64,000 bases of DNA from Anthoceros angustus (taxonomy: Eukaryota > Plantae > Anthocerotophyta), in the NCBI GenBank assembly GCA_010909165.1, contig VJWM01000151.1, positions 186,001 to 250,000 of the forward strand. The letters run 5' to 3'. The position numbers and the translations under genes are program-made. The notes beneath the pieces were generated by a model. The model ran no database searches. It was not told the origin of the DNA and saw only the letters and a program-made list of their open reading frames with translations. This document shows positions 37,290-59,485 of this stretch, one piece after another (position 1 is the stretch's first letter; each line of letters opens with the position of its first letter).

Positions 37290-38590
37290 ATGTCCAAAAC
37301 AAAAGATGAAAAAATAAGTACAAGGAAGATGAAAGGGAAAATGAATTTAAGGAAGATGAAGGGAAAAATGAGCTTAGGGAAGATGAAGGGAAAAATGAGT
37401 TTAAGGAACAGGAAGAAAATAAGTATGAGTAATATCAAGGATGAAACGATTATATGGACACAAATATGAGCAAGATCTATTTCTTAGGAAAGGAAATTGA
37501 ATATTTGGTAAATATTCCTACTGAAGAAGAACTCCAAGAAATACTCTAAGAGTTGGAATGCTTCGATGACAACGCTTTAAAACTCAGATGTGACTTGTAG
37601 AGAGAACCTATACTAAGTGACTTGAAGGACGATATGTGTAAGGAGTTTGATAGGTGCGTTCTACTCTACATATCTGAATAGCGCAAAGTAGAAGGCATTC
37701 ATCTTTATATGCAAGACAAAACTAAAATCGTTCAACTTCTAAGGCCTCTTGGAATAGAGTTTGGCGGCCTTTCTACTAATGAGGAAAAGGATATTCTTCC
37801 TCAAGAAGAAAGTGAATATGAGTCTAGATACATTTTGTCTGAAGAAAAAGACAAATATGTGTACGACAACATTCTTCCAAAAGAAGAAAACAAATATAAA
37901 GAGGACATTATTTCTACTCAAGAAGTAAACCAATATGCCGAGCAAAGTTTTACGCATCTTGAATCTAGATACATTTTCTCTGAAGAAAAAAGAGACTATG
38001 AGTATGAAGACATTCTTACACAAGAAGTAAACCAATATGAGGAGGACATTTTTACTCAAGAAAAAAAACCAATATCGAGAGAAAAAATTCACTCAAGATG
38101 TAAACCAATATGGCGAGGAAATTTTTACACATCTTGAATCTAGATACATTTTTTTTTGAAGAAAAAGGAAAATATGAGAATGAAGACATTCTTACCAAAG
38201 AAGTAAACCAATATGAGGAGGATATTTTTACTCAGGGAAAAAAATAAATATCACCTTTTCACTCAAGACAATCTTACTGAACAAGATAACCAGTATGAGA
38301 AACACCGTGGCTTATTTGAAGACGAAAACGGATATAACGAAGGCATTTTAATAGAGTACGAAAATGAATACGAGAAAGATATTGTCATTGAAGAGGAGAA
38401 CAAATATAATATAGATGTTCGTCTTAACATGGAAAATTTAACTCCGGTTGTCGAACTTCCAACACATCTTGGAAGTGAGTATGACTATCTTTTCACTCAA
38501 GATATTCTTAGTCAACAAAAAGACGAATATGAGGAACTATGATATGTTATTTGCACCATGCCATATAAATTTTCTTGCAGTACATAATTA
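37290..38590 (+). pseudogene. Diverged acidic-family pseudogene containing a fragment of the X1/X2 domain
   Basis: Acidic repeats (QEVNQY.E, RYIF.EEK) and a C-terminus EEL*YVICTMPY homologous to ELWNAICNMPY. In-frame stop codons; no REL insertion. Confidence 0.65.
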
Positions 38591-39757: not shown

Positions 39758-41171
39758 ATGATGACCTTAGATAATTCCAATGACTTGGAGATACAAGTCA
39801 CAAGAACGTGTTCTGCAACTAATTTAGAAGAGAAGGCCAAAATTGCTCAACATCATCTCACAAAATCTCTTCTATCCACTATTCAGATATATGCCTTAGG
39901 TCATGCTGTAAAAGATGCACAGACTCTGGTCAAGAGGATCATTGAAACAAATTTTTTGCAATTGCAAGTAGATTTTAAATTGATTCCTTTCACGACGAGA
40001 AATCGTCCTACAATTAAAAAAGTAACCTGCACTATATATTGGGGAAGTCCTTCAAAATCTCGCTATATTTTCTTACTAGATCCCTTGTGGAGCAACAAAA
40101 TTAGTGCCATACTTCCAAAACATCTTGGAATTGAGTGCGACGACTTCCTTGTTGACGACGAAGACATTCTTAGTACAAAAGACGAATATGAGGGAATGTT
40201 TCCAAGTGAAGAAGAAGAAGAGGAATATGTAAAAAATATTTTTAATGGAAACGAAAATGAGTATGAGGAAGATGAAGAGGAAAACGAGTATAAGCATAAT
40301 AGTTTAACTAAAAAAGAAAATAAATATGATGAAGACATTCATCTTGATGTGGAAGACATGACAAAAATTGTCCAGGGTCCAAGGTATGAAAAAATTGAAA
40401 ATAGCAACTCCTTCACTAATGATGAAGGTATACTTAGTGAGGGTGAAGACGATGATGAGGGAATATTTCTTACTGAAGAGGAAGAAGACTATGCAGAAAA
40501 CATTTTTGCGAAAGAGAGGGATGAGTATAAGGAAGATGATGAAGAAAAAGAATATGAAGAAGACAAAGAAGGAAACAACTATGAGGAAGATGAAGAAGGA
40601 ATCCACTATAACGACAAGCATATTTTTAGTGAAGAACAAGATGAATATGAGCAATACATTTTTACTGAAGACGAATATGAGGAGGACATTTCTACTCAAG
40701 AGGTAAACCAATGTCACGGAGGACATTTCTACATCGGTCTAGTTACATTTTAATGAAGAAGGAATCCACTATAACGACAAGCATATTTTTAGTGAAGAAC
40801 AAGATGAATATGAGCAATACATTTTTACTGAAGACGAATATGAGGAGGACATTTCTACTCAAGAGGTAAACCAATATGCGGAGGACATTTCTACGCATCA
40901 GTCTAGTTACATTTTTAATGAAGAAAAAAATGAATATGAGAACGAAGAAATTCTCATAGAAGAAGTAAACCAATATGAGGAGAACCAAGATATTTTTATA
41001 GAGCAAGAAAATGAATATGAGAAAGATATTTTTATTGAAGAGGAAAAGAAATATGAGGAAGACGTCCTTAAGACATTCACTCAAGACATTCTTACTCCAC
41101 AAGAAGATGAATATGAGGAACTATGGAATGCCATTTGCAACATGCCATATATTTTTTCACGTGAGACGTAA
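39758..41171 (+). CDS. Uncharacterised protein: putative Alba/Rpp20-like domain + long Glu/Asp-rich tail (best-preserved copy)
   Basis: 331-aa ORF 39758-40753, broken near a ~157-bp internal duplication; the acidic frame resumes to ELWNAICNMPYIFSRET* (TAA 41169-41171). A splice-acceptor-like ttttacag lies just before the ATG. Confidence 0.55.
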
Positions 41172-42239: not shown

Positions 42240-42937
42240 CTTCTCCATGCGGCATGTATTTTGTGTTACTTGTAAATATTATATTTTTTGTATTTAACTA
42301 TTTAAGTAAAAATAAAATAAAATATAAAGTATTGATACTTACCTATAGGTGTGGGCCTTGTGCAAGCGTGTAATGTCGTTAGGTACCAATGGAAAGAAGC
42401 TTCATGATGCCCATGTCTATGGCCAGGAAGGATGTGGTGGACATGTTGTGATTGCAGGATATGGTCAGCAAGGAAAGGGTAAAGGAGCCCTAGATCATTA
42501 TGCGGCTAGACAGCAGCAATGCATCACTCCAGGAGGACGTACATTCGTCAGCAATGCATCACTCTAGGAGGACGTACATTCGTCGACAGGAGGCTTTCTA
42601 GCGTTTGCCATTCAACTCTATGTACAAATTCTCGCAAATCCACGTTACATTTCAATCTTTCCCATTTTTCTACCTTTCAATTCCCTCTTTCTTCTCCCCG
42701 TCTACATAGCCCAGCTCTCCATCACTTCCGCCACAAAAACGTACTACCCATCACCAGAATTTTAACATACAAATTTCTTCCAACAATTTTTCCTTTCGCA
42801 AACTAAGGGCTGTACAGAAGTTTGAAGTTCTACCGATACTAACACAACTAATAGGAATTTTCTAGGTGTTTACATGGCCAGCAAGTTTTTGGTAACCCAG
42901 CTATTGCTCCGTGACCGCCTTGAGTGTTGAAGGCTTA

Positions 42938-44948
42938 TCATTGCTGTTGGAGAGGTTGGGATTTCTCCCAAATGCAGTAACCGTTGCCTACTGCTGCCAC
43001 ATTGTATTCATCCAAGCTGGGTGCCAAATCACCAATCTCAATTCTGTCCCCAATCTTCATCACTACTCGATCATCAATCCGTGCAACATACACATCGTTC
43101 TCTGCGGTCACAATGTCCACATTGCTCCGGGAGTTGATTCCGTTGCGATTTCTGATGCTGATGAAGTTTCTCAGCTCTTCCTTCAACCCCCAATCAAAAT
43201 AGTGGTCATAGAACTGCACCATCCAAACACCAAGAGGTGTATCAGTCACCAGCGCATGTTACCAATTAGCTGCGTTAAATGATGCCAGGAACAGGAAGAG
43301 CAGGCCAGGTAGAAGAAAAAAAAGCTTACAATGCAGGGAATGCCGGGGTGCGTCATGATGTAAGCATATCCCTGCATGACTTTGTCAGCCGGGAAGGGCC
43401 AGTGAGCCTGCGTGGATCCCGTGTCGTGGTTGTCGATGAAGGTGACTGCCCTGGAAGGCCAATACCCCAGCATACCCGGAGGCTTGTTGTTGTTATCCCT
43501 CAGCCTCCACAACTCCCCGTTCACAGCCTGCTGCAGGATTCCCTTGGTAGTGAAGTCGAAGCCGTTGCTCGATCACCGGTGGCATGCACCCAGTCCACCA
43601 GCTCCTGACGATGGCTATCCTGGTTGTAATCCAGCCCCTGATCGCCGTATCTGCAGGTAGTCCAGACCTCCCCCACAGAAAACAGGGGCTGCGTCCGCTC
43701 GATGTACATGCCCACATATCCGCCTGCGAAACCCTTGGCAAAGTCGAACCTCCAGCCATCGAAGCCGATGTCCACCTTGAGCCACCTCATCCAGTCGGAA
43801 AGCTCATCCTGCACCGTGGGGTTGGTGTGGTCCAGGTCAGGAGCCGCACCGAAGTCCTCCCCGGTGTCAGGGTTGCCGGAGCCATCGCTGTAGGGTAGTC
43901 GTTCCCAGCGATAGCCCATGGGCCCCAGTCCAGCCGGTCGTCCGGGGTTCCCCTTCGAACAGGCACCACTCGCCTCTCTCATCCTGCCTGTCCGCGCACC
44001 GGTGGTTGATGACGATGTCGGCAATGCAGCGCACTCCCTTTGGTGGAAGGCATCAATCACAGCCTTGAGCTCATCCTCGTTCCCGTACTCGGTGTTGTCC
44101 AGATCCAGGAGCCTGTTAGGCATGTAACCTGCGCCCCCGCACATCACAAGCACACTGTCAACATTTTCTCGAAACCTAGATGGATCACTGTCCAGAATCG
44201 TGCCTGTGCAGGTAGTCATTAGTGCAAGCTGGCTAGAACAAAATCAGATGACGCGGTCAATCCGCGTGAAAGCTGCCTGACATTAAACACAAGTGATATC
44301 ATACTGTGCCAGAGTGTAAGGCTATTGCAATAGATACCTTGAGGCGCCACAGAGTGAGTGGCCGGAGGAAACCAAATATCCGTCACACCTGCTTCCGCCA
44401 AATCATCAACATTCTTCTTCAACACATTGTACCATCCATCCTTATGCTTCCAAGACTCCCAATTAAACCCCTGACAGCGAGCCTTTCCATCAGAAAACGT
44501 GCCACAGCCACCAGATCCTACATAGATCAACGTTTCGAACACAATGTTCAAGCTTCCGTAGCCTCAAAGAGCCTCCTACCTGGAACATGATGATCTTGCT
44601 CCAATCAGCCTCAATGTTGCCGCCGCGAGACACCGTCTCCTGGGGCTCGGCCTCAACCTCACCAGGACTAACTTCCACCGCATTCAACACAACTTCCTCA
44701 GCTCCGGCGGCCTCCTGCACCGCTTCCGCTCCTGCCACCGCGTGCAGGCGGCAGGAACTGCGCCGGGTGCGGCTTCTCCCTCGGCTTCCGGAGTACCTCA
44801 ACCCAGGCTCCGCCAAGCGGCTAGACCTCACTCTCACAACGCCATAGCCACTGTGCGCAGAGCATTTCTGCCTTTGTGGCGCCGGGGAGCACTCGGACAG
44901 GCTGCCACACTGCACCACGCTTCTGAAACCGGCTGTAAGAGCCGCCAT
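42938..44948 (-). CDS. AMY1: Alpha-amylase (GH13, plant family-1-like), 4 exons: 44948-44580, 44470-44338, 44128-43330, 43213-42938
   Basis: [74 protein letters not shown] introns. Apparent frameshifts lie only in homopolymers. Confidence 0.92.
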
Positions 44949-45325
44949 TGTTGGAATTGAGAGCCGGCAGCCAGCAAAGGAGGCTTCCAGCAGCTGAACA
45001 AGGGACACGAATGCAAGTGTTGGTGGAACCCTGGCAGATCAGGTCGAGATAGGAGCAGACGATCTTTGGAATGCCGCGACGGGGGTGAAATTGGAATGCT
45101 CTTCTCAAAGAGCTCGTGCGTTTATAAGGCTCATGTTTGGCCTCCATCGGAGCTGTCAGGACACAGGTGGCGCCAAGGTAACGCTTGCCACGCGGCTATC
45201 TGTAAGAAATTGCGGCGCAATGGGCCGCTATGGCGACGCCGCGCGGCACAACAATATCACGTGGAACCGGGGTACGACGTTCTGGACCGCGAGCCAAAAG
45301 GCTCCAGGTGTTCGGCTCCAGCTCC
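42953..45325. repeat. Left arm of ~2.4-kb inverted repeat (right arm 56213-58600)
   Basis: Reverse-complement match from the promoter region to just before the stop codon. Confidence 0.93.
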
Positions 45326-46023: not shown

Positions 46024-48243
46024 CTAAGTCTTGCTCGTAAGCTTGCTGCGCCTGGTTTCTTGCACAGGCTCGGGAGACGTGTTATCATCTAGTTGCAGCA
46101 TTTTCTTCGCAACTCTTTTCTGCTCCTCAAAAGCTTTGGCAAGTCCAGCTTGCACCTCCGTCACGAGGGAACGCTGCTTCTGGAGGTCGTGCTTCATTTT
46201 CCCTAAAATCTGGAGGTGTTGTTGCAAATCGGTGACCCATTGCTTCCAGGCGGTGTACTGAGCATAAGTGAACTCTGGCCATGGATGCACAGGCTTCCTA
46301 CGGAGGATGTCAGAATACTTCCTGTTAGCCTGTTCAAGAAGGGCCTCTCGCATATCCAGTCTTCCCTGATGGAGGGCCAGTCTCGATTTCAGGTTCTGAG
46401 TTCTTTCTTCCGCCAGAGTCATACTCAGACGCACATCCTCCCTTACCTCTTCCCGTTTGCCATCCTCCGACATGTAGTGTAAGGCTTCTTGGTCGAAAAG
46501 CTCCAGAGCGTATTCCCCAGCCGAGGTCCGTATCAGCCGTCTCTTAAGATCCGCCCTAAGACTCTGCAGGTGGTCATCTAGAGAGCCACGGAAGTCCACC
46601 ACGCCACCAGGACCCGGATTCGAACCTGCGACAGTGCCTCTGTAAGGTTCGATCTGGAGAGGCCGGGCTTGGGGTTGCGGTTGTGTTCTCTTATCAACCT
46701 CTCCTGAAGGGCACACATCCTGATGCAGAGCCGAACACATATCCACATCCTCATTCCGCTTAGGCTCCTTAGCTGGATCAGGCTGCTTTCGTTGATCTAT
46801 TCTCAAGGGCCCACGCACATACTGATGAGGCTCCGGCTGCTTCGGTCGGTTTCTTCTCAAATCCTGATCCCGATCCATCCCCGCCTCCTTAGCCGGGATA
46901 CCAGGACCAGGACCCAGACTCGAACCTGTGACAGGGCCTCTGTAAGGTTCGATCTGGAGAGGCCGGGGTTGGGGTTGCGGTTGTGCTCTCTTATCAATCT
47001 CCCTTGAAGGGCACACATCCTGATGCAGAGCCGAACACATATCCACATCCTCATTCCGCTTAGGCTCCTTAGCTGGATCAGGCTGCTTTCGTTGATCTAT
47101 TCTCAAGGGCCCACGCACATTCTGATGAGGCTCCGGCTGCTTCGGTCGGTTTCTTCTCAAATCCTGATCCCGATCCATCCCCGCCTCCTTAGCCGGGATA
47201 CCAGGACGAGGACCCAGACCCGAACCTGTGACAGTGCCCCTGTAAGGTTCGATCTGGAGAGGCAGGGCTTGGGGTTGCGGTTGTGCTCTCTTATCAACCT
47301 CTCCCGAAGGGCACACATCCTGATGCAGAGCCGAACACATATCCACATCCTCATTCCGCTTAGGCTCCTTAGCCGGATCAGGCTGCTTTTGTTCATCTGT
47401 TCGCAAGGGCGCACACACGTACCGATGAGGCTCCGGCTGCTTTGGTCGGTTTCTTCTGAAATCCTGACACAAATCCTGATCCCGATCCATCCCCGCCTCC
47501 TTAGCCGGGATACCAGGCTCCTTCCGCTGGTCTGTTTCGAAAGCCGGACACATATCCTCATCCTGATCCAGCTTCACCTCCTTAGCGGGACCAGGCTCCT
47601 CTGATCCCTCCATTTTCACGATTGCACGCACACGCTGCTCCGGCTTCGGATCCTTCGAGTGTTTTACTCCTTCAAATTCCTTGTCCTTGAGGAACAGCTC
47701 CTGTCTGCCGCCAAATCCTGCAGAGCTCGCCATCGGGAGTATGCTTTGTGTATCAGACTCAGACTCCGAGTCATCGTACTTCAATTCTCCTCCTGGCCCC
47801 CGCCGCTCTAGCTTCCTCAGCACCTGCAATTCCACCACCAGGTATCGGCATACGATCCGCATCAGAACGTAGCACCAGACAAACGGGAAGATAAAATTGT
47901 GCACCATTTCAAAGCTCAAACTGTAACGGCTACCTACCTCTCTCACAATGGTTGCTGCTTCCTTGGGATTTTGGTTCTGCAGCGCCAAATATTTCTCAGC
48001 TATGTCATCAGGTACTATACTAGACGACGGTACGAATGGGCGGGAGTTCTGATTTACAACGGTTGTGGTGCGTTGCTCACACATAACAACACTTGCTTCA
48101 AGATCACACCAAGTATCCAGCACTTCTCCCTGCTCGATCCCTCGAGAGTCAGATGAATTCATGAGGATAGTATGTAGCAGGTGCTCAGCTCCCACTTCAA
48201 GAGAACGAGAACTCTTAAACGAAACTGAAAGGAAGACGATCAT
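46024..48243 (-). CDS. Uncharacterised protein X1 (three ~100-aa repeats + C-terminal helical domain)
   Basis: 739-aa ORF; probable in-frame 114-nt phase-0 intron 47937-47824 (GTAGGT..TTGCAG). Start uncertain (48243, 48162 or 48084). Confidence 0.75.
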   Translation of the reverse strand: MIVFLSVSFKSSRSLEVGAEHLLHTILMNSSDSRGIEQGEVLDTWCDLEASVVMCEQRTTTVVNQNSRPFVPSSSIVPDDIAEKYLALQNQNPKEAATIVREVGSRYSLSFEMVHNFIFPFVWCYVLMRIVCRYLVVELQVLRKLERRGPGGELKYDDSESESDTQSILPMASSAGFGGRQELFLKDKEFEGVKHSKDPKPEQRVRAIVKMEGSEEPGPAKEVKLDQDEDMCPAFETDQRKEPGIPAKEAGMDRDQDLCQDFRRNRPKQPEPHRYVCAPLRTDEQKQPDPAKEPKRNEDVDMCSALHQDVCPSGEVDKRAQPQPQALPLQIEPYRGTVTGSGLGPRPGIPAKEAGMDRDQDLRRNRPKQPEPHQNVRGPLRIDQRKQPDPAKEPKRNEDVDMCSALHQDVCPSREIDKRAQPQPQPRPLQIEPYRGPVTGSSLGPGPGIPAKEAGMDRDQDLRRNRPKQPEPHQYVRGPLRIDQRKQPDPAKEPKRNEDVDMCSALHQDVCPSGEVDKRTQPQPQARPLQIEPYRGTVAGSNPGPGGVVDFRGSLDDHLQSLRADLKRRLIRTSAGEYALELFDQEALHYMSEDGKREEVREDVRLSMTLAEERTQNLKSRLALHQGRLDMREALLEQANRKYSDILRRKPVHPWPEFTYAQYTAWKQWVTDLQQHLQILGKMKHDLQKQRSLVTEVQAGLAKAFEEQKRVAKKMLQLDDNTSPEPVQETRRSKLTSKT
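46606..47517 (-). repeat. In-frame 300/312-bp tandem repeat x3 in X1
   Basis: Anchor gccgggataccagg at 46892, 47192 and 47504; PGIPAKEAGMDRDQDL..PLQIEPYRG units. Confidence 0.95.
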
Positions 48244-48584
48244 AATATCTATCTGGTTGTTAACTTTGTGTTGCCCAATCTATGTACAAGGATATTTCAA
48301 AGCATGCAGAACTACGTGGTTGCACATAGCTGCACAGGAACTGCAGTTCAAATGATTCCATTTCCAGCAACCATACTGTGTCGGTGATGACCGTCACGTA
48401 AGCTATTTGCCAAAACCTGTTACTGTTGGAGACGCATGCAGAGCTTGTTATGAATAATCGTTTGTCGCTCGCAAGGCTTAGCTTATTCTAGACCTTGAGC
48501 GGGAAGAGATTGCTCTTTGGTTCGTTTTTCCTATCCTATGCCAACTTCTACTTGCTTCTGAGCGCTTTACATGTTCTATGTTCT

Positions 48585-50869
48585 ATGTCGAACATGGAGT
48601 CTTTGGATGTTCCAGACGACATTAAGGAAATCCTGACTCCAGAGCAGAAGGCGCTGCTGATTGAGCGCCGAAAGCTGCCAGCCGAAATTAAGGAGCAAGT
48701 AATCGGGGCAGATTCTAAAGGAGAAGCCAGAGGTGGTGCCAACCAGCAAGATGAAACGGGTTTTCCTAAAGCACAAGCCAGGGGTAGTGCCAACCAGCAA
48801 GATGACACGGGTTTTGCCGTTGTTGCTTGCCGGACCCCTGATTCTCCACCAGATGCAAGATATCAAAGTGCGTCACAAGGGGTTAGGTTACTGGCCCTTG
48901 ATAATGGGTGCTGTGTTTTCTGGTCCTGCCACTGGCTCAGTTTTCTGTTGCTTCCACTTGGTGGAGTTTTCTGTTGCTTCCCTGGTGCAGTTTTCTGTTC
49001 CTTCCATTGGGGCAGTTTCCTAATTCCTAAGGACATTTCTAGGAATCATTCTAATTTTACGGACATTTTCAGGATTCAGGTGCCATCCAGGTGTATATGC
49101 ATACTGGGCGTCCTCCTGGGCAGGAGCTGTATCAGCCTCCTCCTCATGCACAAAACTCCCGGTATCTGCCGCAGCCTCATCCTCACCAGTTGGATCTGTC
49201 GCAACGACAACAAGAACCATCTCAGCAATTGCAAAAACGGAAGCACCAGCCTCAACCGCCTCAGCAACCGCACATGTTTCATCAGTATCCGCCTCAGCAA
49301 TTGCACCAACAGAGTCACCGTCCTCAGCAACTACACCAGCAGAATCAGCGATACTTGGCTCAGCAGAATCAGCGATTCTTCCCTCAGAAGGCGGTATTTG
49401 ATAGAGGGTATCCAACCAGCCAATGGGGGCCTAATCCGAGCACTCCGATGCTAGACTATGAGAGTCACCAAAATTTGCCATGCACGGGAAGCTATGACAG
49501 TCAACAAAATTTGGACAGCAGGTTCTACACGGCAGATCAGAGGCTGGTGCCACCGAGGAAAGGTTATCAAAGTGCTTCCAACAGGGTGGATGAGACTGCA
49601 GCCAACAAAAGGGTTGGGGTGGACGAGACTGCTCTCACCAGGGTACAGGAGAGTGGGGATAAGAGGGCTTTAAGCTACTGGGAGAAGAGGGGTCTGCCGA
49701 CTGACGGCATACTCTTAAACAAGAAGATGTATCTGTGCGGCCTCACACCTGATAGGGTGCTCTTCAAGTATTTTACTAAAATACAGGGGTCTTTGGTCCC
49801 TGATCGGCCTATGGATAAGAAAATGCAGGAGAACATGGAAGTTTTGTATGAGAAGATCTTTGAGAGACCGTTGAACGTATTAGATGGGAAGGTGAGCATG
49901 AAGTTTGGGAGAGCCTTTATTGCCCAGGAACTGAAGAAAAAGAAATTCAATTGGGCTCAGTATGCTATGTCGGAATATATACGTATTGCAGACAGAAATG
50001 CGAAGAAAGCTTTGGCTTTGAAGAGGAGACAGTCGAAGCCGATGGTAGAAAATGACCACGATGCTGAAGGAGATGGTGATTGGGATGGAGACGGTGATGG
50101 GGATGGGGACGGCGATGGAGAATGGGAAGCTGAAGGTGAGGGCGAAGGGTTAGGTGAAGGTCATGACGTAGATGATATGAAACTGGACACCCAATACCAA
50201 ATTTCCGGGCAGGCTGAAGAGGTGGAGTTCGGTGAGAGCGACCGTCACGCTCACTTGCCTTACACGCCCACCACTCCTTCTGAGACCCAAACGCACACGC
50301 ATATCCGCGGTAAGTTGGATGAAGACATCCAGAAACTGAGAGTTGAATTGCAGAGAGGTCTCATGCTGACAGACTTTAAGGACGAGATGCTTGGTGAGTT
50401 TGATAGGTGCGTTATGCCCTACCTGTCTGAAAAGTGCAAAGTGGAGCAGGACAAGGCGGACCTAAATCAAGCACTAGTTCTGGCCGAGAATAAGTGTAGG
50501 CTCCTGGAGGCCGATCTATACTCTGCCAAGGGCAAGAAGGACATGGAGAGCTTTTGTGTCCACGAGGGCATTCAATCTCTCCAGGCTGTTGTTGCAAGGA
50601 AGCCTGCGGAGTCCGCGGACCCTGAAACAGTCGAAACGAATCTGGCAGCCGCGAAGAAATGGATCCAGGAATTGAAGGAAGGGTGCATGCACGTTGGGTA
50701 CTCAAAGCACGGGGTCCAAGAACAGGAAAAGGCATACGAGAAGTTTGCTGCAGAGCATGCTGCGGCCTCGGCTGAGCGGATTGCCCTCACCAGGAAGCTC
50801 AACCAGCTTCAGGCCTTACGGTCGATTGGAGATACGGAAGATGCCAGCAACAAGCGTCTCAAACTCTGA
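48585..50869 (+). CDS. Uncharacterised protein X2 (~697 aa; exons 48585-48881, 49073-50869)
   Basis: Exon 1 MSNMESLDVPDDIKE..; GT at 48882, T-rich intron, TTTTCAG at 49072 joining in frame to the 592-aa ORF. Q/P-rich region, globular YWEKRG..NWAQYA block, DG repeats, C-terminal helical domain, terminal KRLKL. Confidence 0.8.
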
Positions 50870-51030
50870 CCAGGCACGTACACACTAGTGTGCCACTGTC
50901 TAAGTTGGGCGATGAACAGTTCTCGCTGGAACCTCATGAACCTCACCTCATGAACCTCATGGGAACCTCATAGACAAGCTCACGAGCAGTTGTTGCCGAA
51001 ACCTCAAAGCCTTTCCCTTCAGCTCATATC

Positions 51031-51325
51031 GTTGCTCGTGTGTTGAAGTTTCGTTGCTCATGTGCTGAAGTTTCGTTGCTCATGTGTTGAAGTTTCGTTG
51101 CTCATGTGTTGAAGTTTCGTTGCTCATGTGTTGAAGTTTCGTTGCTCATGTGTTGAAGTTTCGTTGCTCATATATTCAAGTTTCGTCGCTCATGTGTTGA
51201 AGTTTCGTTGCTCATTTGTTGAAGTTTCGTTGGTCATGTATTCAAGTTTCGTTGCTCATGTGTTGAAGTTTCGTTGCTCATTTGTTGAAGTTTCGTTGCT
51301 CATATATTCATATTTCGTTGCTCAG
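51031..51325. repeat. 22-bp minisatellite x~13 with an emerging 66-bp higher-order unit
   Basis: gttgctcatgtgttgaagtttc; variant order is A-run, then B-A-C-B'-A-C-B''. Confidence 0.95.
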
Positions 51326-51861
51326 ATGTTCAGGCTTGGCTCAAAGAAATAGTGGGCTCACGACGTCTTTGAAGTTCATTTCAACACAAAAGGTTACGTA
51401 CATATCCAATGAGAGCCTATGGATCTAGGAGTTTGTTTTTGTAGGATTTCGGATTGTTTTGAGAGTCTTGCAGGGGTGATATGGCCAAAAAAAAGAGCAT
51501 CCTTACAAAGTAATTATATCTTGTTTTCACCTGATATCATCCCCATGGTTCGTGTTCTTTCATAGTCTAGTATTCTTTGAAAGGGGATATATAATACTTA
51601 TTCCTTTTCAAAGAATTTATCTATACTAAAAGTTCCCGAAAAGTATAGGTGGATAGTCTTATATAGAGGTGTTTTTAGGACTTCTTTGCTCCTCTCATGG
51701 GTAGGTACGCTCCTCTTGGACCTTTTATTTTACATCCCTCTTGTTAGCCTGTCTTGTAGTATCTGTCTATCTATCAGAGCTGCATGCACAATAAAAACAC
51801 ATCTTTTTAAATCTCAAACATGCACGATAAAATGCACGATAAAATTGGCTTCTAGAACCAC

Positions 51862-52130
51862 CCAATGCTAGAGATCCTGCTTATTCAAGACTTGCTTCTC
51901 AATCAACCCAATGCTCGAGATCCTACTTATTCAAGACTTTGCTTCTCAATCAACCCAATGCTAGAGATCCTGCTTATTCAAGACTTGCTTCTCACTCAAC
52001 CCAATGCTAGAGATCTTGCTTATTCAAGACTTGCTTCTCAATCAACCCAATCCTAGAGATCTTGCTTATTTAAGACTTGCTTCTCAATGCTAGAGATCCT
52101 ACTTATTTAAGACTTGCTTCTCAATAAACC
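51862..52130. repeat. 46-bp tandem repeat x~6
   Basis: caatgctagagatcctgcttattcaagacttgcttctcaatcaacc; starts at 51863 and 51909. Confidence 0.93.
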
Positions 52131-54060: not shown

Positions 54061-56603
54061 TTCTCTTTTCCGATCCTATTTAATTAATTTTATTATTTAT
54101 TTTAGATCATTTAAAAATAACTATATTATTTCTATTAATTATAATAAAATTATAAAAAGATAAAAGCTTATTTGAATGGAGGTGCTATCAGTAAGGTAAG
54201 GAAGGAGATTAAAGAAAGGAGATCTTCTATTGAATAAATAAGGTAATGAATGACAAGAGGATCATTTCAACGCTTTCTAATATTTGGATAAGATCATTGA
54301 ATTTAGAAATTCCAAATGTCTTTTGTCCGTTTTAAACATGTACAATTAGAGTTTATTTTTGAAGCCACACATGCATTTTATTTTTGTCTTATCTTCAAGA
54401 GTGACATCTAGACGTGGATCCATTTTGAACTTGATTGTGTGCACAATGACAAAAGCTAAAAATGGTTGGTTATAACTAGCCTAAAGGTCTTGAGAATCAC
54501 GGGTGCTCTGTTAGATACACATACTAAATAGAGATGCTACCAGACATACAAATATTAGCATATGCCCCTACACACATAGTTAAGTTTCTTGTGATAAAGT
54601 TTGATAGAGTCCACCAGGTCAAGCTTACCTAAAAGTTTAATAGAGTCCACCTCATCAAGCTTACCTATAGTGTTTGATAGAGTCCACCAGTCAAGCTTAC
54701 CTATAGAGTTTGATAGAGTCCACCACCAAGCTTACTATAAAGTTTGATAGAGTCCATCAAGCTTACTATAAAGTTTCATGAGTCCACCACTCAAGCTTAC
54801 CCCTCAATTCACGGGACTTATAGAATGCCAATCTTGCACAATCTTTTTAGCTTGTGATAGCGGCTTTGTGACAATCTACAGTTCAAGAGGGCGTGCATTT
54901 GCAATCGTACATAAACCAATTGCACCGTCCTCTAAGCGCAACAACTTCCGATGATGGGGATGCCGAGCACTAGTACTCCTAAAGCGAGATGTTGCGGGCT
55001 TACCTTGCCTCCTTCCAACTCATCCGGTGGACACCTTGACTCTCAAACATATCGAGAATTCAAGGATTCAAAGCAGTTATAACTTAGATAGAAGTGCAAG
55101 TCATGGTTGGAGTCGGAATCGACCCACACCGCCACCTAGTACAATTCAAGAGGACAGCTTCTATATGTAGGTCTACCCTCATACTCCATTTCAAGGTCTT
55201 CTATCTGGAAAACCTCTTGCACGCTTGGTCATCGCCCAAAGTAGCCTCTCCGGACACGTTCATCACAGTGCACTAACGACCCTTTTCCTTAAGAGTCCAT
55301 GCATTGCATAAACACAAGCTTAAAGTACTAAATTAGTCGAACTAGAAATTATTTATAACAGTTAAATTATTTTATGATTTTTCAAGTTGTGCCAAGAAAG
55401 ACATGCGAAATGAAATCGTATTGTATGTATTTTGATTTTTTTTTCTTCTAATTATTTGAGGTAACTAATCGCTTGTATTTTTGTATCCGTTTCAATAAGA
55501 AGTGAAATTAGTGAAACAAAGGCGTTTCTACAAGCCACCACCTCCTCCAAGTAAGTCCATCGCCTTGCGTCTCCTCTCTCTATCCCATAGGCTTGACAGC
55601 GGTATTTTCGCATTTTTATCCAATTCTGGGAAACCAGTGCTCCCTCTTTACCTTCGCATCCCTGTGTCTTTCAAATTAAGGATGATTATAGGTAATCTTC
55701 GTCGAGTCTCACCGTCTTAGGATTGAGACGGATAGATGGCTAAGCCACCACCAAAGGAGTCTAGAATCTGCAGGGTTATACAGGTGGAGATCAAGAACAC
55801 TTTGTGTTCCTCTATCACATCTATGAAGATATTCGGGGGAATTTTATCCCTCTATTTACAACAGCACGATCTTCACTTCGCCGCTTTTTCTCTTTTCCTG
55901 ATCCTATTTCTGTAGGTGTCTGCCTAAAGCAAATGTGGGAGAAGCGGACTCAACATTTTCAAGAGTTCAACATACATGACATTACATAATGATTCATGTC
56001 ACTAGTTCTCAGGCCAGATTCAGAATAGCGGTTAATTTTTCATTATACCTTCTTCGTATGTATGACAAATCAGTCCCATGACAGAAACCATCCTTAGTGG
56101 ATTTAAATAAAATTTTTCCCTCTCACCTGAAATCGACTAGACACCAGTTTACAGGCTAGCGTTGCATAGACTTTATAAACTAAACTAGGATCCATTGATC
56201 CATTTTGATGACAGGAAGCGGGAGCCGAACACCTGGAACCTTTTGGCTCGCATTTCTGAAAATCTGCGTCCGAGTTTCCTTGTGATACCATTGATGCCGC
56301 GTGGCGTTTCTACACCGTCGCATTCCCCGCAATGTCTCAAAGATAGCCTCGTGGCAAGTGCTTCCTGGCGCCACCTGTGTCCGGCCGCTCCGACTGGAGC
56401 CAAAACATGAGCTTGTAGACCACGCGCGGGAGCTGCGTGCGAGGAGCGTTCGAAAGCACTGCCTTCGTTGCGTTCCACAGACCATCTGCTCCGCTGTCGA
56501 TCACATCGGTCAAGGTTCCACAGAAATTGCATCTGTCTCTCCTGTTTGATCGCTTCAGCTGCGTCAAGCTTCCTTTGCTGGCTGCCGGCTCTCAATTCCA
56601 ACA

Positions 56604-58614
56604 ATGGCGGCTCTTACAGCCGGTTTCAGAAGCGTGGTGAAGTGTGGCAGCCTGTCCGAGTGCTACCCGGGGCCACAAAGACAGGAATGCTCTGCGCACA
56701 GTGGCTATGGCGTTGTGAGAGTGAGGTCTAGCCGGTTGGCGGAGCCTGGGTTGAGGTACTCCGGAAGCCGAGGGAGAAGCCGCACCCCGGCGCAGTTCCT
56801 GCCGCCTGCACGCGGTGGCAGGAGCGGAAGCAGTGCAGGAGGCCGCCGGAGCTGAGGAAGTTGTGTTGAATGCGGTGGAAGTTAGTCCTGGTGAGGTTGA
56901 GGCCGAGCCCCAGGAGACGGTGTCTCGCGGCGGCAACATTGAGGCTGATTGGAGCAAGATCATCATGATCCAGGTAGGAGGCTCTTTGAGGCTGTGGAAG
57001 CTTGAACATTGTGTTCGAAGTTGATCTATGTAGGTTCTGGTGGCTGTGGCACGTTTTCTGATGGAAAGGCTCGCTGCCAGGGGTTTAATTGGGAGTCTTG
57101 GAAGCATAAGGATGGATGGTACAATGTGTTGAAGAAGAATGTTGATGATTTGGCGGAAGCTGGTGTGACGGATATTTGGTTTCCTCCGGCCACGCACTCT
57201 GTGGCGCCTCAAGGTAACTATTGCAATTGCCTCACACTCTGGCACAGTATGATATCACTTGTGTTCAATGTCAGGCAGCTTTCACGCGGATTGACTCCGT
57301 CATTTGATTTTGTTCTATCCAGCTTGCACAAATGACTAGTGTGCACAAGCACGATTCTGGACAGTGATTCATCTAGGTTTCGAGAAAATGTTGACAGTGT
57401 GCTTGTGATGTGCGGGGGCGCAGGTTACATGCCTAACAGGCTCCTGGATCTGGACAACACCGAGTACGGGAACGAGGATGAGCTCAAGGCTGTGATTGAT
57501 GCCTTCCACCAAGGGAGTGCGCTGCATTGCCGACATCGTCATCAACCACCGGTGCGCGGACAGGCAGGATGAGAGAGGCGAGTGGTGCCTGTTCGAAGGG
57601 GAACCCCGGACGACCGGCTGGACTGGGGCCCATGGGCTATCGCTGGGAACGACTACCCCTACAGCGATGGCTCCGGCAACCCTGACACCGGGAGGACTTC
57701 GGTGCGGCTCCCGACCTGGACCACACCAACCCCACGGTGCAGGATGAGCTTTCCGACTGGATGAGGTGGCTCAAGGTGGACATCGGCTTCGATGGCTGGA
57801 GGTTCGACTTTGCCAAGGGTTTCGCAGGCGGATATGTGGGCATGTACATCGAGCGGACGCAGCCCCAGTTTTCTGTGGGGGAGGTCTGGACTACCTGCAG
57901 ATACGGCGATCAGGGGCTGGATTACAACCAGGATAGCCATCGTCAGGAGCTGGTGGACTGGGTGCATGCCACCGGTGATCGAGCAACGGCTTTCGACTTC
58001 ACTACCAAGGGAATCCTGCAGCAGGCTGTGAACGGGGAGTTGTGGAGGCTGAGGGATAACAACAACAAGCCTCCGGGTATGCTGGGGTATTGGCCTTCCA
58101 GGGCAGTCACCTTCATCGACAACCACGACACGGGATCCACGCAGGCTCACTGGCCCTTCCCGGCTGACAAAGTCATGCAGGGATATGCTTACATAATGAC
58201 GCACCCCGGCATTCCCTGCATTGTAAGCTTTTTTTTCTTCTACCTGGCCTGCTCTTCCTGTTCCTGGCATCATTTAACGCAGCTAATTGGTAACCTGCGC
58301 TGGTGACTGATACACCTCTTGGTGTTTGGATGGTGCAGTTCTATGACCACTATTTTGATTGGGGGTTGAAGGAAGAGCTGAGAAACTTCATCAGCATCAG
58401 AAACCGCAACGGAATCAACTCCCGGAGCAACGTGGACATTGTGACCGCAGAGAACGATGTGTATGTTGCACGGATTGATGATCGAGTAGTGATGAAGATT
58501 GGGGACAGAATTGAGATTGGTGATTTGGCACCCAGCTTGGATGAATACAATGTGGCAGCAGTAGGCAACGGTTACTGCATTTGGGAGAAATCCCAACCTC
58601 TCGAACAACAGTAA
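56604..58614 (+). CDS. AMY1: Alpha-amylase (GH13, plant family-1-like), 4 exons: 56604-56973, 57081-57213, 57424-58222, 58339-58614
   Basis: Same motifs and intron positions as the minus copy; catalytic regions RFDFAKG, GEVW and DNHDT intact. Frameshifts lie only in homopolymers. Confidence 0.92.
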
Positions 58615-59485
58615 CAAAAACGCGCACCGTAGGTTGTGCATGGTTAGAGGTGGCTGTACAACAGAAACAGGCAGACTGTAAAAAGGTAGATAATTTATGT
58701 ACATTAAGATCTGATTCAAAGTTTGAAGAGGAACATGCAGTTATGCGCATGTCAGTCTGCCTGTTCAAATTAGAAGGCCAGGTCCCCCGCAGAACAAACA
58801 GAAACTGGTAGAATGTAAAAAGGTAGAGAAGTTATGTACATTGATGTTATCATTGAAAATTTGAGGGGATATATGCAGTGTCCATGTCAGTCTGCTTGTT
58901 GAAATAGAAGGCGCACTGGTAAATAGCAGCTGCCAGTTCCCTCGCAGAACAAACGGAGAGCAGATCATATCCAGTACAAATGGGAAATAGATCATATCTA
59001 AAACAAACGTCACAACGTCTATGGCTCGAGTCGAAATTCTAGGCGAGGTAGCTGCCTGTCAGAACTGGCAGAATGCATGCATATCCAGTTCTAGTATGCT
59101 TCGAAGATGTACATTTTCCTCGTCTGTCAGAATCGGGAATCAAAGAACGTTAGCTGACAGGCTGGGCAACTCAACCTACATAGTAGCTTGTCCTCAACCT
59201 GGGTTCTGCTTTTTTCTATTTTCCTAAAGCTAACAAAGGACGCTGAGAAGCTGGAGCTAGTGTGAATGCTACAAATCTGTTCACATGCCTGCAGCCTCTC
59301 CTGTGGCGCCTTCGGATGGTCAGAGGGGACAACAAATCTGTTATTTAGTCCCCGATCTAGTTAGGTTGCTGGGCTGGAGTACTGGTGGGTAGGAGACAGG
59401 TCCTAGCATGCATCCAGAAGGAAGTTTACGAGCTTGGACAAATAACCTGTGCTGCTAGCCTGCCTTGTCTTTGGGCCAGCGAAAG

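Follow-up and report, generated by a model that had tools for sequence, protein, structure and literature searches.

A head-to-head gene pair in the hornwort Anthoceros angustus as probable members of a small, apparently hornwort-restricted protein family

We analysed a stretch of 64,000 nucleotides from the hornwort Anthoceros angustus (assembly GCA_010909165.1, contig VJWM01000151.1, positions 186001 to 250000 of the forward strand), here called the window and numbered from its first letter. At 46024-50869 it carries two divergently arranged genes, X1 on the minus strand and X2 on the plus strand, which a preliminary description of the same DNA had picked out as uncharacterised paralogues. 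The two share a C-terminal region of about 185 amino acids (aa), the C-domain, and we consider them, on balance, to belong to a small protein family seen so far in hornworts. The features of the pair are as follows.

46024-48243, minus strand: X1 whole open frame, 739 codons (from the list of open reading frames)
47938-48162, minus strand: X1 exon 1, 75 codons from the ATG at 48162 (open reading frame and sequence reading)
47824-47937, minus strand: X1 predicted intron, 114 nt, in frame, phase 0, GT..AG, acceptor ttgcag/GTG (sequence reading)
46024-47823, minus strand: X1 exon 2, stop codon at 46024-46026 (open frame and segment composition)
46606-47505, minus strand: X1 tandem repeats, 3 x 300 bp, encoding units of 100-104 aa rich in Pro, Arg, Gln and Asp (Tandem Repeats Finder, TRF, and repeat search)
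46027-46602, minus strand: X1 copy of the C-terminal helical-hairpin domain, 192 codons including the tail ...RRSKLTSKT
48163-48584, no strand: spacer between the divergent X1 and X2 start codons, 422 bp with the X1 ATG at 48162 and 341 bp with that at 48243
48585-50869, plus strand: X2 whole gene
48585-48698, plus strand: X2 exon 1, 38 codons, MSNMESLDVPDDIKEILTPEQKALLIERRKLPAEIKEQ, ending in EIKEQ; donor CAA/GTAATC, phase 0 (sequence reading)
48699-49072, plus strand: X2 predicted intron 1, 374 nt, phase 0, GT..AG, acceptor ttttcag/GAT
49073-50869, plus strand: X2 exon 2, stop codon at 50867-50869 (open frame)
49649-50035, plus strand: X2 globular block, about 125 aa, basic (isoelectric point 9.9, net charge +13)
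50036-50293, plus strand: X2 acidic linker, 86 aa, net charge -25, with an 18-nt Asp-Gly/Glu-Gly repeat at 50069-50118
50294-50866, plus strand: X2 copy of the C-terminal domain plus the basic tail NKRLKL (alignment A2, AlphaFold2)

Counted from the ATG at 48162, the modelled spliced product of X1 has 674 aa, with the ATGs at 48243 and 48084 as alternative starts. Exon 1 contains VPDDIAE and reaches its 3' end (...ATIVRE) at the phase-0 donor GAG/GTAGGT, while exon 2 begins with a unique acidic stretch of 103 aa, which is followed by three repeats of 100 aa each and then by the C-domain. The modelled spliced product of X2 has 636 aa. Stops close the exon-2 frame of X2 upstream, until about 49052, and the acceptor at 49072/49073 is therefore the likely junction. 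Small repeats of 51 and 25 nt lie inside the predicted X2 intron 1, at 48715-49018: the 51-nt duplication is in frame with exon 1 (GEARGGANQQDETGF / AQARGSANQQDDTGF), and the 25-nt repeat is present in about four copies. In an alternative model, X2 exon 1 may extend further 3'. As the preliminary description had stated, the predicted first intron of each gene is in phase 0, and the genes are separated by less than 0.5 kb, their start codons lying 341-500 bp apart depending on the X1 ATG. Both predicted introns have GT..AG ends. The spacer between them could act as a shared promoter.

The same description had called the middles of the two proteins unrelated and had credited X2 with an additional globular block and a terminal KRLKL, and this is what we find: X1 has its three 300-bp units, whereas X2 has a Gln/Pro-rich stretch followed by the globular block and an acidic tract, with a short basic patch between the last two, and ends in NKRLKL.

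The resemblance of the C-termini proved robust. A tblastn comparison of X2 with the window matched 46593-46090 with 49 identities over 169 aa (29%, E 1e-16), agreeing with the similarity first counted by hand, and BLASTP with compositional adjustment gave 30% identity over 141 aa at E 1e-15. The Smith-Waterman (SW) score of X1 against X2 was 196, compared with 36 +/- 6 in shuffled sequences (z 24-28; highest shuffle 74), where the controls comprised 2000 shuffles each of the global, 14-residue-block and 7-residue-block kinds; z was 24 even when shuffling was confined to 7-residue blocks. The similarity thus survives correction for coiled-coil composition, the test that had been named for it (E 1e-15, z 24-28). 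Across X1, X2 and three further proteins described below (P0001, P0002 and P0003), alignment A2 has 21 invariant columns, with the pattern D-x3-Q-x-LR-x2-L ... T ... L-x2-FD ... S ... E ... RKP ... K-x-W-x3-L ... G ... Q. Among the residues that recur unchanged in every one of the five sequences, several fall outside the heptad pattern: FD, W, G, T and, in the turn of the hairpin, RKP. That X1 and X2 are true paralogues is a supported reading of these alignments.

To look for relatives, an HMMER profile (A1) combining X2 residues 184-592 with the X1 C-domain was searched against 1.84 billion representative proteins. Eight proteins fell below E 1e-3, three of them being Asp-Gly low-complexity matches. 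P0001, P0002 and P0003 carry the block together with the C-domain, are all X2-like and are the sole C-domain relatives in that collection, while in P0004 and P0005 only the block is present. These five proteins were found in Logan assemblies made from two runs of a single organism, which we call the relative. A six-block profile search added only P0010, a 109-aa Trinity transcript with 81% identity to P0003, which comes from the hornwort Nothoceros aenigmaticus. Neither X1 nor X2 had a match in Pfam (for X2, to a limit of E 1), searches of the PDB by sequence and by profile yielded only hits with E above 0.1, a word-index search with the X2 C-domain found no match, and ESM Atlas feature searches with the C-domain and the block gave top scores of 0.82-0.85, which is the level of shuffled sequences. 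The earlier statement that no known family could be recognised is borne out by the empty Pfam and PDB sequence searches and by the finding of only three C-domain relatives among so many proteins. A literature search on the plant mobile domain or hornworts turned up only general hornwort papers. Other land plants are heavily represented in the libraries, so the family appears to be at least strongly restricted, and hornwort-only as far as it has been seen.

Identities between C-domains are 28% for X1 and X2, 35% for X1 and P0001, 41% for X2 and P0001, and 61% for P0001 and P0002. In a tree of the five C-domains X2 groups with P0001 and P0002, and X1 lies outside with the long-branched P0003 at a support (78/90) too weak for placing X1. 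The grouping of X2 with P0001 and P0002 indicates that the split between X1 and X2 predates that between the two organisms. The basic block upstream of an acidic linker is present in X2 and in P0001-P0003 and absent from X1; in the homologues, linkers rich in Asp and Glu occupy the position that the acidic linker has in X2, and basic C-terminal clusters occur in all members (NKRLKL, KRRRMRL, KSRRLRL, KKRKVATL and RRSKLTSKT). Read from these alignments, the full architecture of X2 and its three relatives would run from a short N-terminal helix motif through a disordered low-complexity stretch, the basic block and the strongly acidic linker to a helical domain (about 180 aa) followed by a short basic tail. 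X1 appears to keep the N-terminal exon, the conserved intron and the helical domain, with block and linker replaced by three recently amplified 100-aa disordered repeats. After the block of P0004, an open reading frame at L005:3937-4608 contains what look like degenerate counterparts of the initial C-domain helices (D-x3-L-x-IR-x2-L ... T ... L-x2-F), a weak match (hhalign E 0.008, probability 5%), and P0004 could be a full-length member that has diverged or been broken.

Gene structure in the relative can be read from two of its contigs, L001 and L004, which come from different runs. L001 equals L004 minus 14 introns with canonical GT..AG, CT..AC or GC..AG ends, apart from two further gaps without a placeable canonical pair; the GT..AG ends mark plus-strand genes, and the CT..AC ends, with one GC..AG at a repetitive junction, mark a minus-strand RanBP1-like gene. 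It follows that L001 was assembled from spliced RNA and that P0001, an X2-like gene, is transcribed. L001 also merges spliced transcripts from three neighbouring genes, which lie on both strands (X2-like, RanBP1-like and S1P-type subtilase), and this indicates overlapping transcription units in a compact genome. Within the P0001 gene, an in-frame 114-nt phase-0 intron at L004:1055-1168 is spliced out in L001. Residues 36-75 of X1 exon 1 align without gaps to residues 49-88 of P0001 (SW 62 compared with 25.8 +/- 4.6; reached by 0 of 3000 shuffles), and both stretches end exactly at introns of equal length and phase. This match gives good indirect support, by homology, for the X1 intron and for X1 as a family member beyond its tail. 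For X2 exon 1, the homologue is a different exon of the P0001 gene that lies further upstream, L004:422-526 (MEIELPEDVKAIMTTEQLALLLERRK...EIRE; SW 85 against 22.6 +/- 4.2, again with 0 of 3000 shuffles reaching the score), and the homology ends at EIKE. The P0001 counterpart of X2 exon 2 runs without interruption as a single exon in the spliced transcript. P0009 is P0001 read through its intron, on a contig that ends about 420 bp upstream of the first exon. P0002 and P0003 are tandem neighbours on one strand.

These homologies bear on the N-terminal VPDDI.E that the preliminary description took as common to X1 and X2. The literal motif is in both proteins, but the match is weak (SW 31, equalled by 100 of 3000 shuffles, p about 0.03) and the segments that contain it correspond by homology to separate parts of the gene in the relative. 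VPDDI.E is probably not a shared homologous feature, and would instead be chance or a very old internal echo.

Another way to view the family is through predicted structure. For the C-domain, AlphaFold2 with alignment A2 (five sequences) gave a confident prediction, a long antiparallel helical hairpin with a predicted local distance difference test score (pLDDT) of 86.9 and a predicted template modelling score (pTM) of 0.65. Helices are predicted at residues 3-25, 31-45, 48-103 and 112-185 of 50288-50866, followed by a disordered basic tail, and the invariant RKP lies at the turn joining the two long helices. A Foldseek search against the PDB and an Atlas shape search returned generic long-helix proteins only (SMC arms, BAR domains, Vipp1, ERM and HlyD-type hairpins), the best at E 0.02 and none reaching 0.001. 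As modelled, the C-domain is new as a sequence family and ordinary in its predicted fold. The new domain of about 170 aa announced in the preliminary description thus stands as an undescribed, taxon-restricted sequence family, but its fold is a generic antiparallel helical hairpin by AlphaFold2 and Foldseek. For the X2 block, the best AlphaFold2 model (alignment A3, six sequences) has pLDDT 84.7 and pTM 0.77, three of the five models being poor; the predicted fold is mixed alpha/beta, and Foldseek found no PDB match.

Around the pair, the window contains plant-type alpha-amylase exons at 43.5-44.2 kb (minus strand) and 57.7-58.3 kb (plus strand), remains of retroelements and, at 60-63 kb, a gene for a protein kinase, and it shows no synteny with the relative's contigs apart from the family genes themselves. 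The amylase exons lie in an inverted repeat of 2.06 kb (42935-44998 / 56554-58617, 96-100% identical) that encloses X1 and X2. Its centre, at about 50776, differs from the X1/X2 midpoint at about 48400, and the arms would therefore be far younger than the 28%-identical X1 and X2, or homogenised. Directly downstream of the X2 stop are a 22-bp satellite (50985-51380) and a 46-bp satellite (51841-52124). A further trace of the family lies upstream:

37562-37741, plus strand: pseudogene fragment of the C-domain's first helices (tblastn E 4e-8, translation)

The fragment is nearer to X2 (47% over 60 aa) and has two in-frame stops. Its region, 37502-37771, lies just upstream of and overlaps an acidic-repeat open reading frame at 37709-38137, which is a member of a locally amplified acidic family with another occurrence at 39758-40753.

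The relationship of X1 and X2, and the standing of X1 as a working gene, have to be weighed against other explanations. Leu, Glu, Lys, Gln and Ala abound in both C-terminal regions, for which long helices are predicted, and the similarity of the two might be a by-product of coiled-coil composition instead of common descent; as an origin of the similarity we regard a composition artefact as ruled out, with a probability close to nil, by the E-value of 1e-15 obtained despite compositional adjustment, the z of 24 under 7-residue-block shuffles and the recurrence of the non-heptad invariants in every sequence. A second possibility, which we hold to be unlikely, is that X2 alone works and that X1 is a decaying paralogue, its block lost and its frame kept open largely by the recent triplication of a stop-free 300-bp unit. 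X1 indeed lacks the block present in all four other full members, with no remnant detected by hhalign, and no X1-type protein was found in the relative by the profile search of the 1.84 billion proteins. Its repeat units are 86-97% identical (TRF: period 300, 2.9 copies, 94% matches), and units 2 and 3 differ by 13 nt in 10 non-synonymous codons and no synonymous one (8, 3 and 2 differences at the three codon positions). Further reading frames across the repeats are open too, and the locus has already yielded the pseudogene fragment at 37562-37741. Against decay, the C-domain of X1 is old, with an overall identity of 26-35% to every relative, yet its 192 codons contain no stop or frameshift and, of the 33 columns without variation among the four X2-like sequences, the domain retains 21 (64%), from which we take it to be constrained. 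Exon 1, moreover, is still homologous to P0001, and the intron keeps its GT..AG consensus, phase and length. X1 is, by these comparisons, best described as a block-less variant of the family.

The remaining question is whether the family came from a transposon, as the preliminary description had suggested in proposing a domesticated transposable-element accessory protein. In its most specific form, the X2 block would be a remote, shortened and domesticated relative of the plant mobile domain (PMD, PF10536). Proteins of the PMD type are non-enzymatic and reside in the nucleus, and the PMD, at roughly 350 aa, compares with about 125 aa for the block. In the ESM Atlas shape search the block reached a template modelling score (TM) of 0.57 to a 135-aa cluster whose sole recorded phylum is Streptophyta, and matched a cluster that is 100% PF10536 with TM 0.55 by query and 0.34 by target, over 112 residues at a root-mean-square deviation of 4.0, which is a weak match; there are also several partial copies of family genes, in the relative (P0004, P0005) and in the window. 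The TM value of the PMD match, however, is near chance level for short helical models, and only two of the five AlphaFold2 models are confident. The PF10536 profile matched none of the six block sequences even at E up to 10, the HMMER profile search gave no PMD protein, the feature search did not rank the PMD, and no solved PMD structure was among the PDB search results for the block. Nor does the context resemble that of a transposon: no terminal inverted or long terminal repeats flanking the pair were found, no transposase, reverse transcriptase or integrase adjoins any family copy at the six loci including the window, and the neighbours of family genes are ordinary host genes (amylase, S1P-type subtilase, RanBP1-like) or lack a transposon domain. 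The proposed search for homologues in transposon contexts returned no transposon domains at five related loci, and with terminal repeats missing, host neighbours ordinary and intron positions conserved, the idea of a domesticated accessory protein is not upheld; a PMD origin in particular strikes us as very unlikely.

We therefore return to X1 and X2 as an anciently diverged pair in a small, so far hornwort-only family, whose members would be non-enzymatic scaffold or adaptor proteins and not transposon genes, a reading that we consider somewhat better than even. Helical-hairpin modules usually mediate self-association, and if the C-domain hairpin does so, the family members would form homo- or hetero-oligomers. 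The basic tail, together with the basic patch after the block, would direct the proteins to the nucleus. In X2-type members the basic block would bind an acidic partner, possibly a nucleic acid, and the adjacent acidic linker would modulate this binding. X1 might then be a block-less partner or a variant with a fast-evolving repeat region, and the head-to-head position may permit joint regulation of X1 and X2.

Several points weigh against this scheme. Oligomerisation, nuclear targeting and ligand binding are all read from predicted structure and charge. The tripeptides LKL, MRL and LRL after basic residues may instead be what we presume to be weak signals resembling peroxisomal targeting signal 1. 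The X1 repeats are, to judge from their sequence, young and without visible purifying selection. The relative also has adjacent paralogues, but not in a head-to-head layout. The databases contain few hornwort proteomes, and this may account for part of the apparent restriction to hornworts. A single RNA run for the source species contained next to none of the sequence words of the X1/X2 locus and gave zero records on it, a result that is uninformative either way.

A bolder version of the same idea is that hornworts invented two undescribed domains, the fold of the block being perhaps new to the PDB, and that X1 and X2 assemble through their hairpins into a heteromeric nuclear scaffold in which the rapidly changing X1 repeats provide a variable surface, for interaction or condensate formation, connected with biology peculiar to hornworts; we think this distinctly unlikely. 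At present the locus amounts to a catalogue entry for an uncharacterised family and not to a mechanistic discovery. Hornworts nonetheless are a deep and little-studied lineage of land plants, and genes restricted to them are candidates for their unusual biology. The locus is a clean example: neither of the family's two domains is annotated, its gene structure is conserved, relatives provide evidence of expression, and a full-length member (X2) has as its neighbour a variant that naturally lacks the block (X1).

Compared with known systems, the family shares single traits with several. The predicted shape of the C-domain is like that of generic helical-hairpin modules, such as SMC arm fragments, BAR/F-BAR domains, Vipp1/PspA/ESCRT-III and the soluble alpha-pore-forming toxins: as in these modules, long helices (here of 56 and 74 residues) are predicted to fold back on each other, with two short helices in addition. 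The matches to such modules, however, have TM 0.2-0.5 at 8-19% identity, without a sequence relationship, and the family lacks the flanking parts by which these modules are defined, namely ATPase heads, membrane-binding surfaces and pore-forming heads. With the PMD of MAIN/MAIL proteins and transposon-borne copies, the X1/X2 family has in common that it appears plant-specific, but it differs in having neither a match to the PF10536 hidden Markov model nor a transposon context. Lastly, the succession of a basic domain (+13 in X2) and an acidic stretch (-25) recalls HMGB-type proteins. This would be an analogy of architecture only, as X2 has neither an HMG-box nor another Pfam DNA-binding domain, and in place of these a block with a predicted mixed alpha/beta fold unmatched in the PDB.

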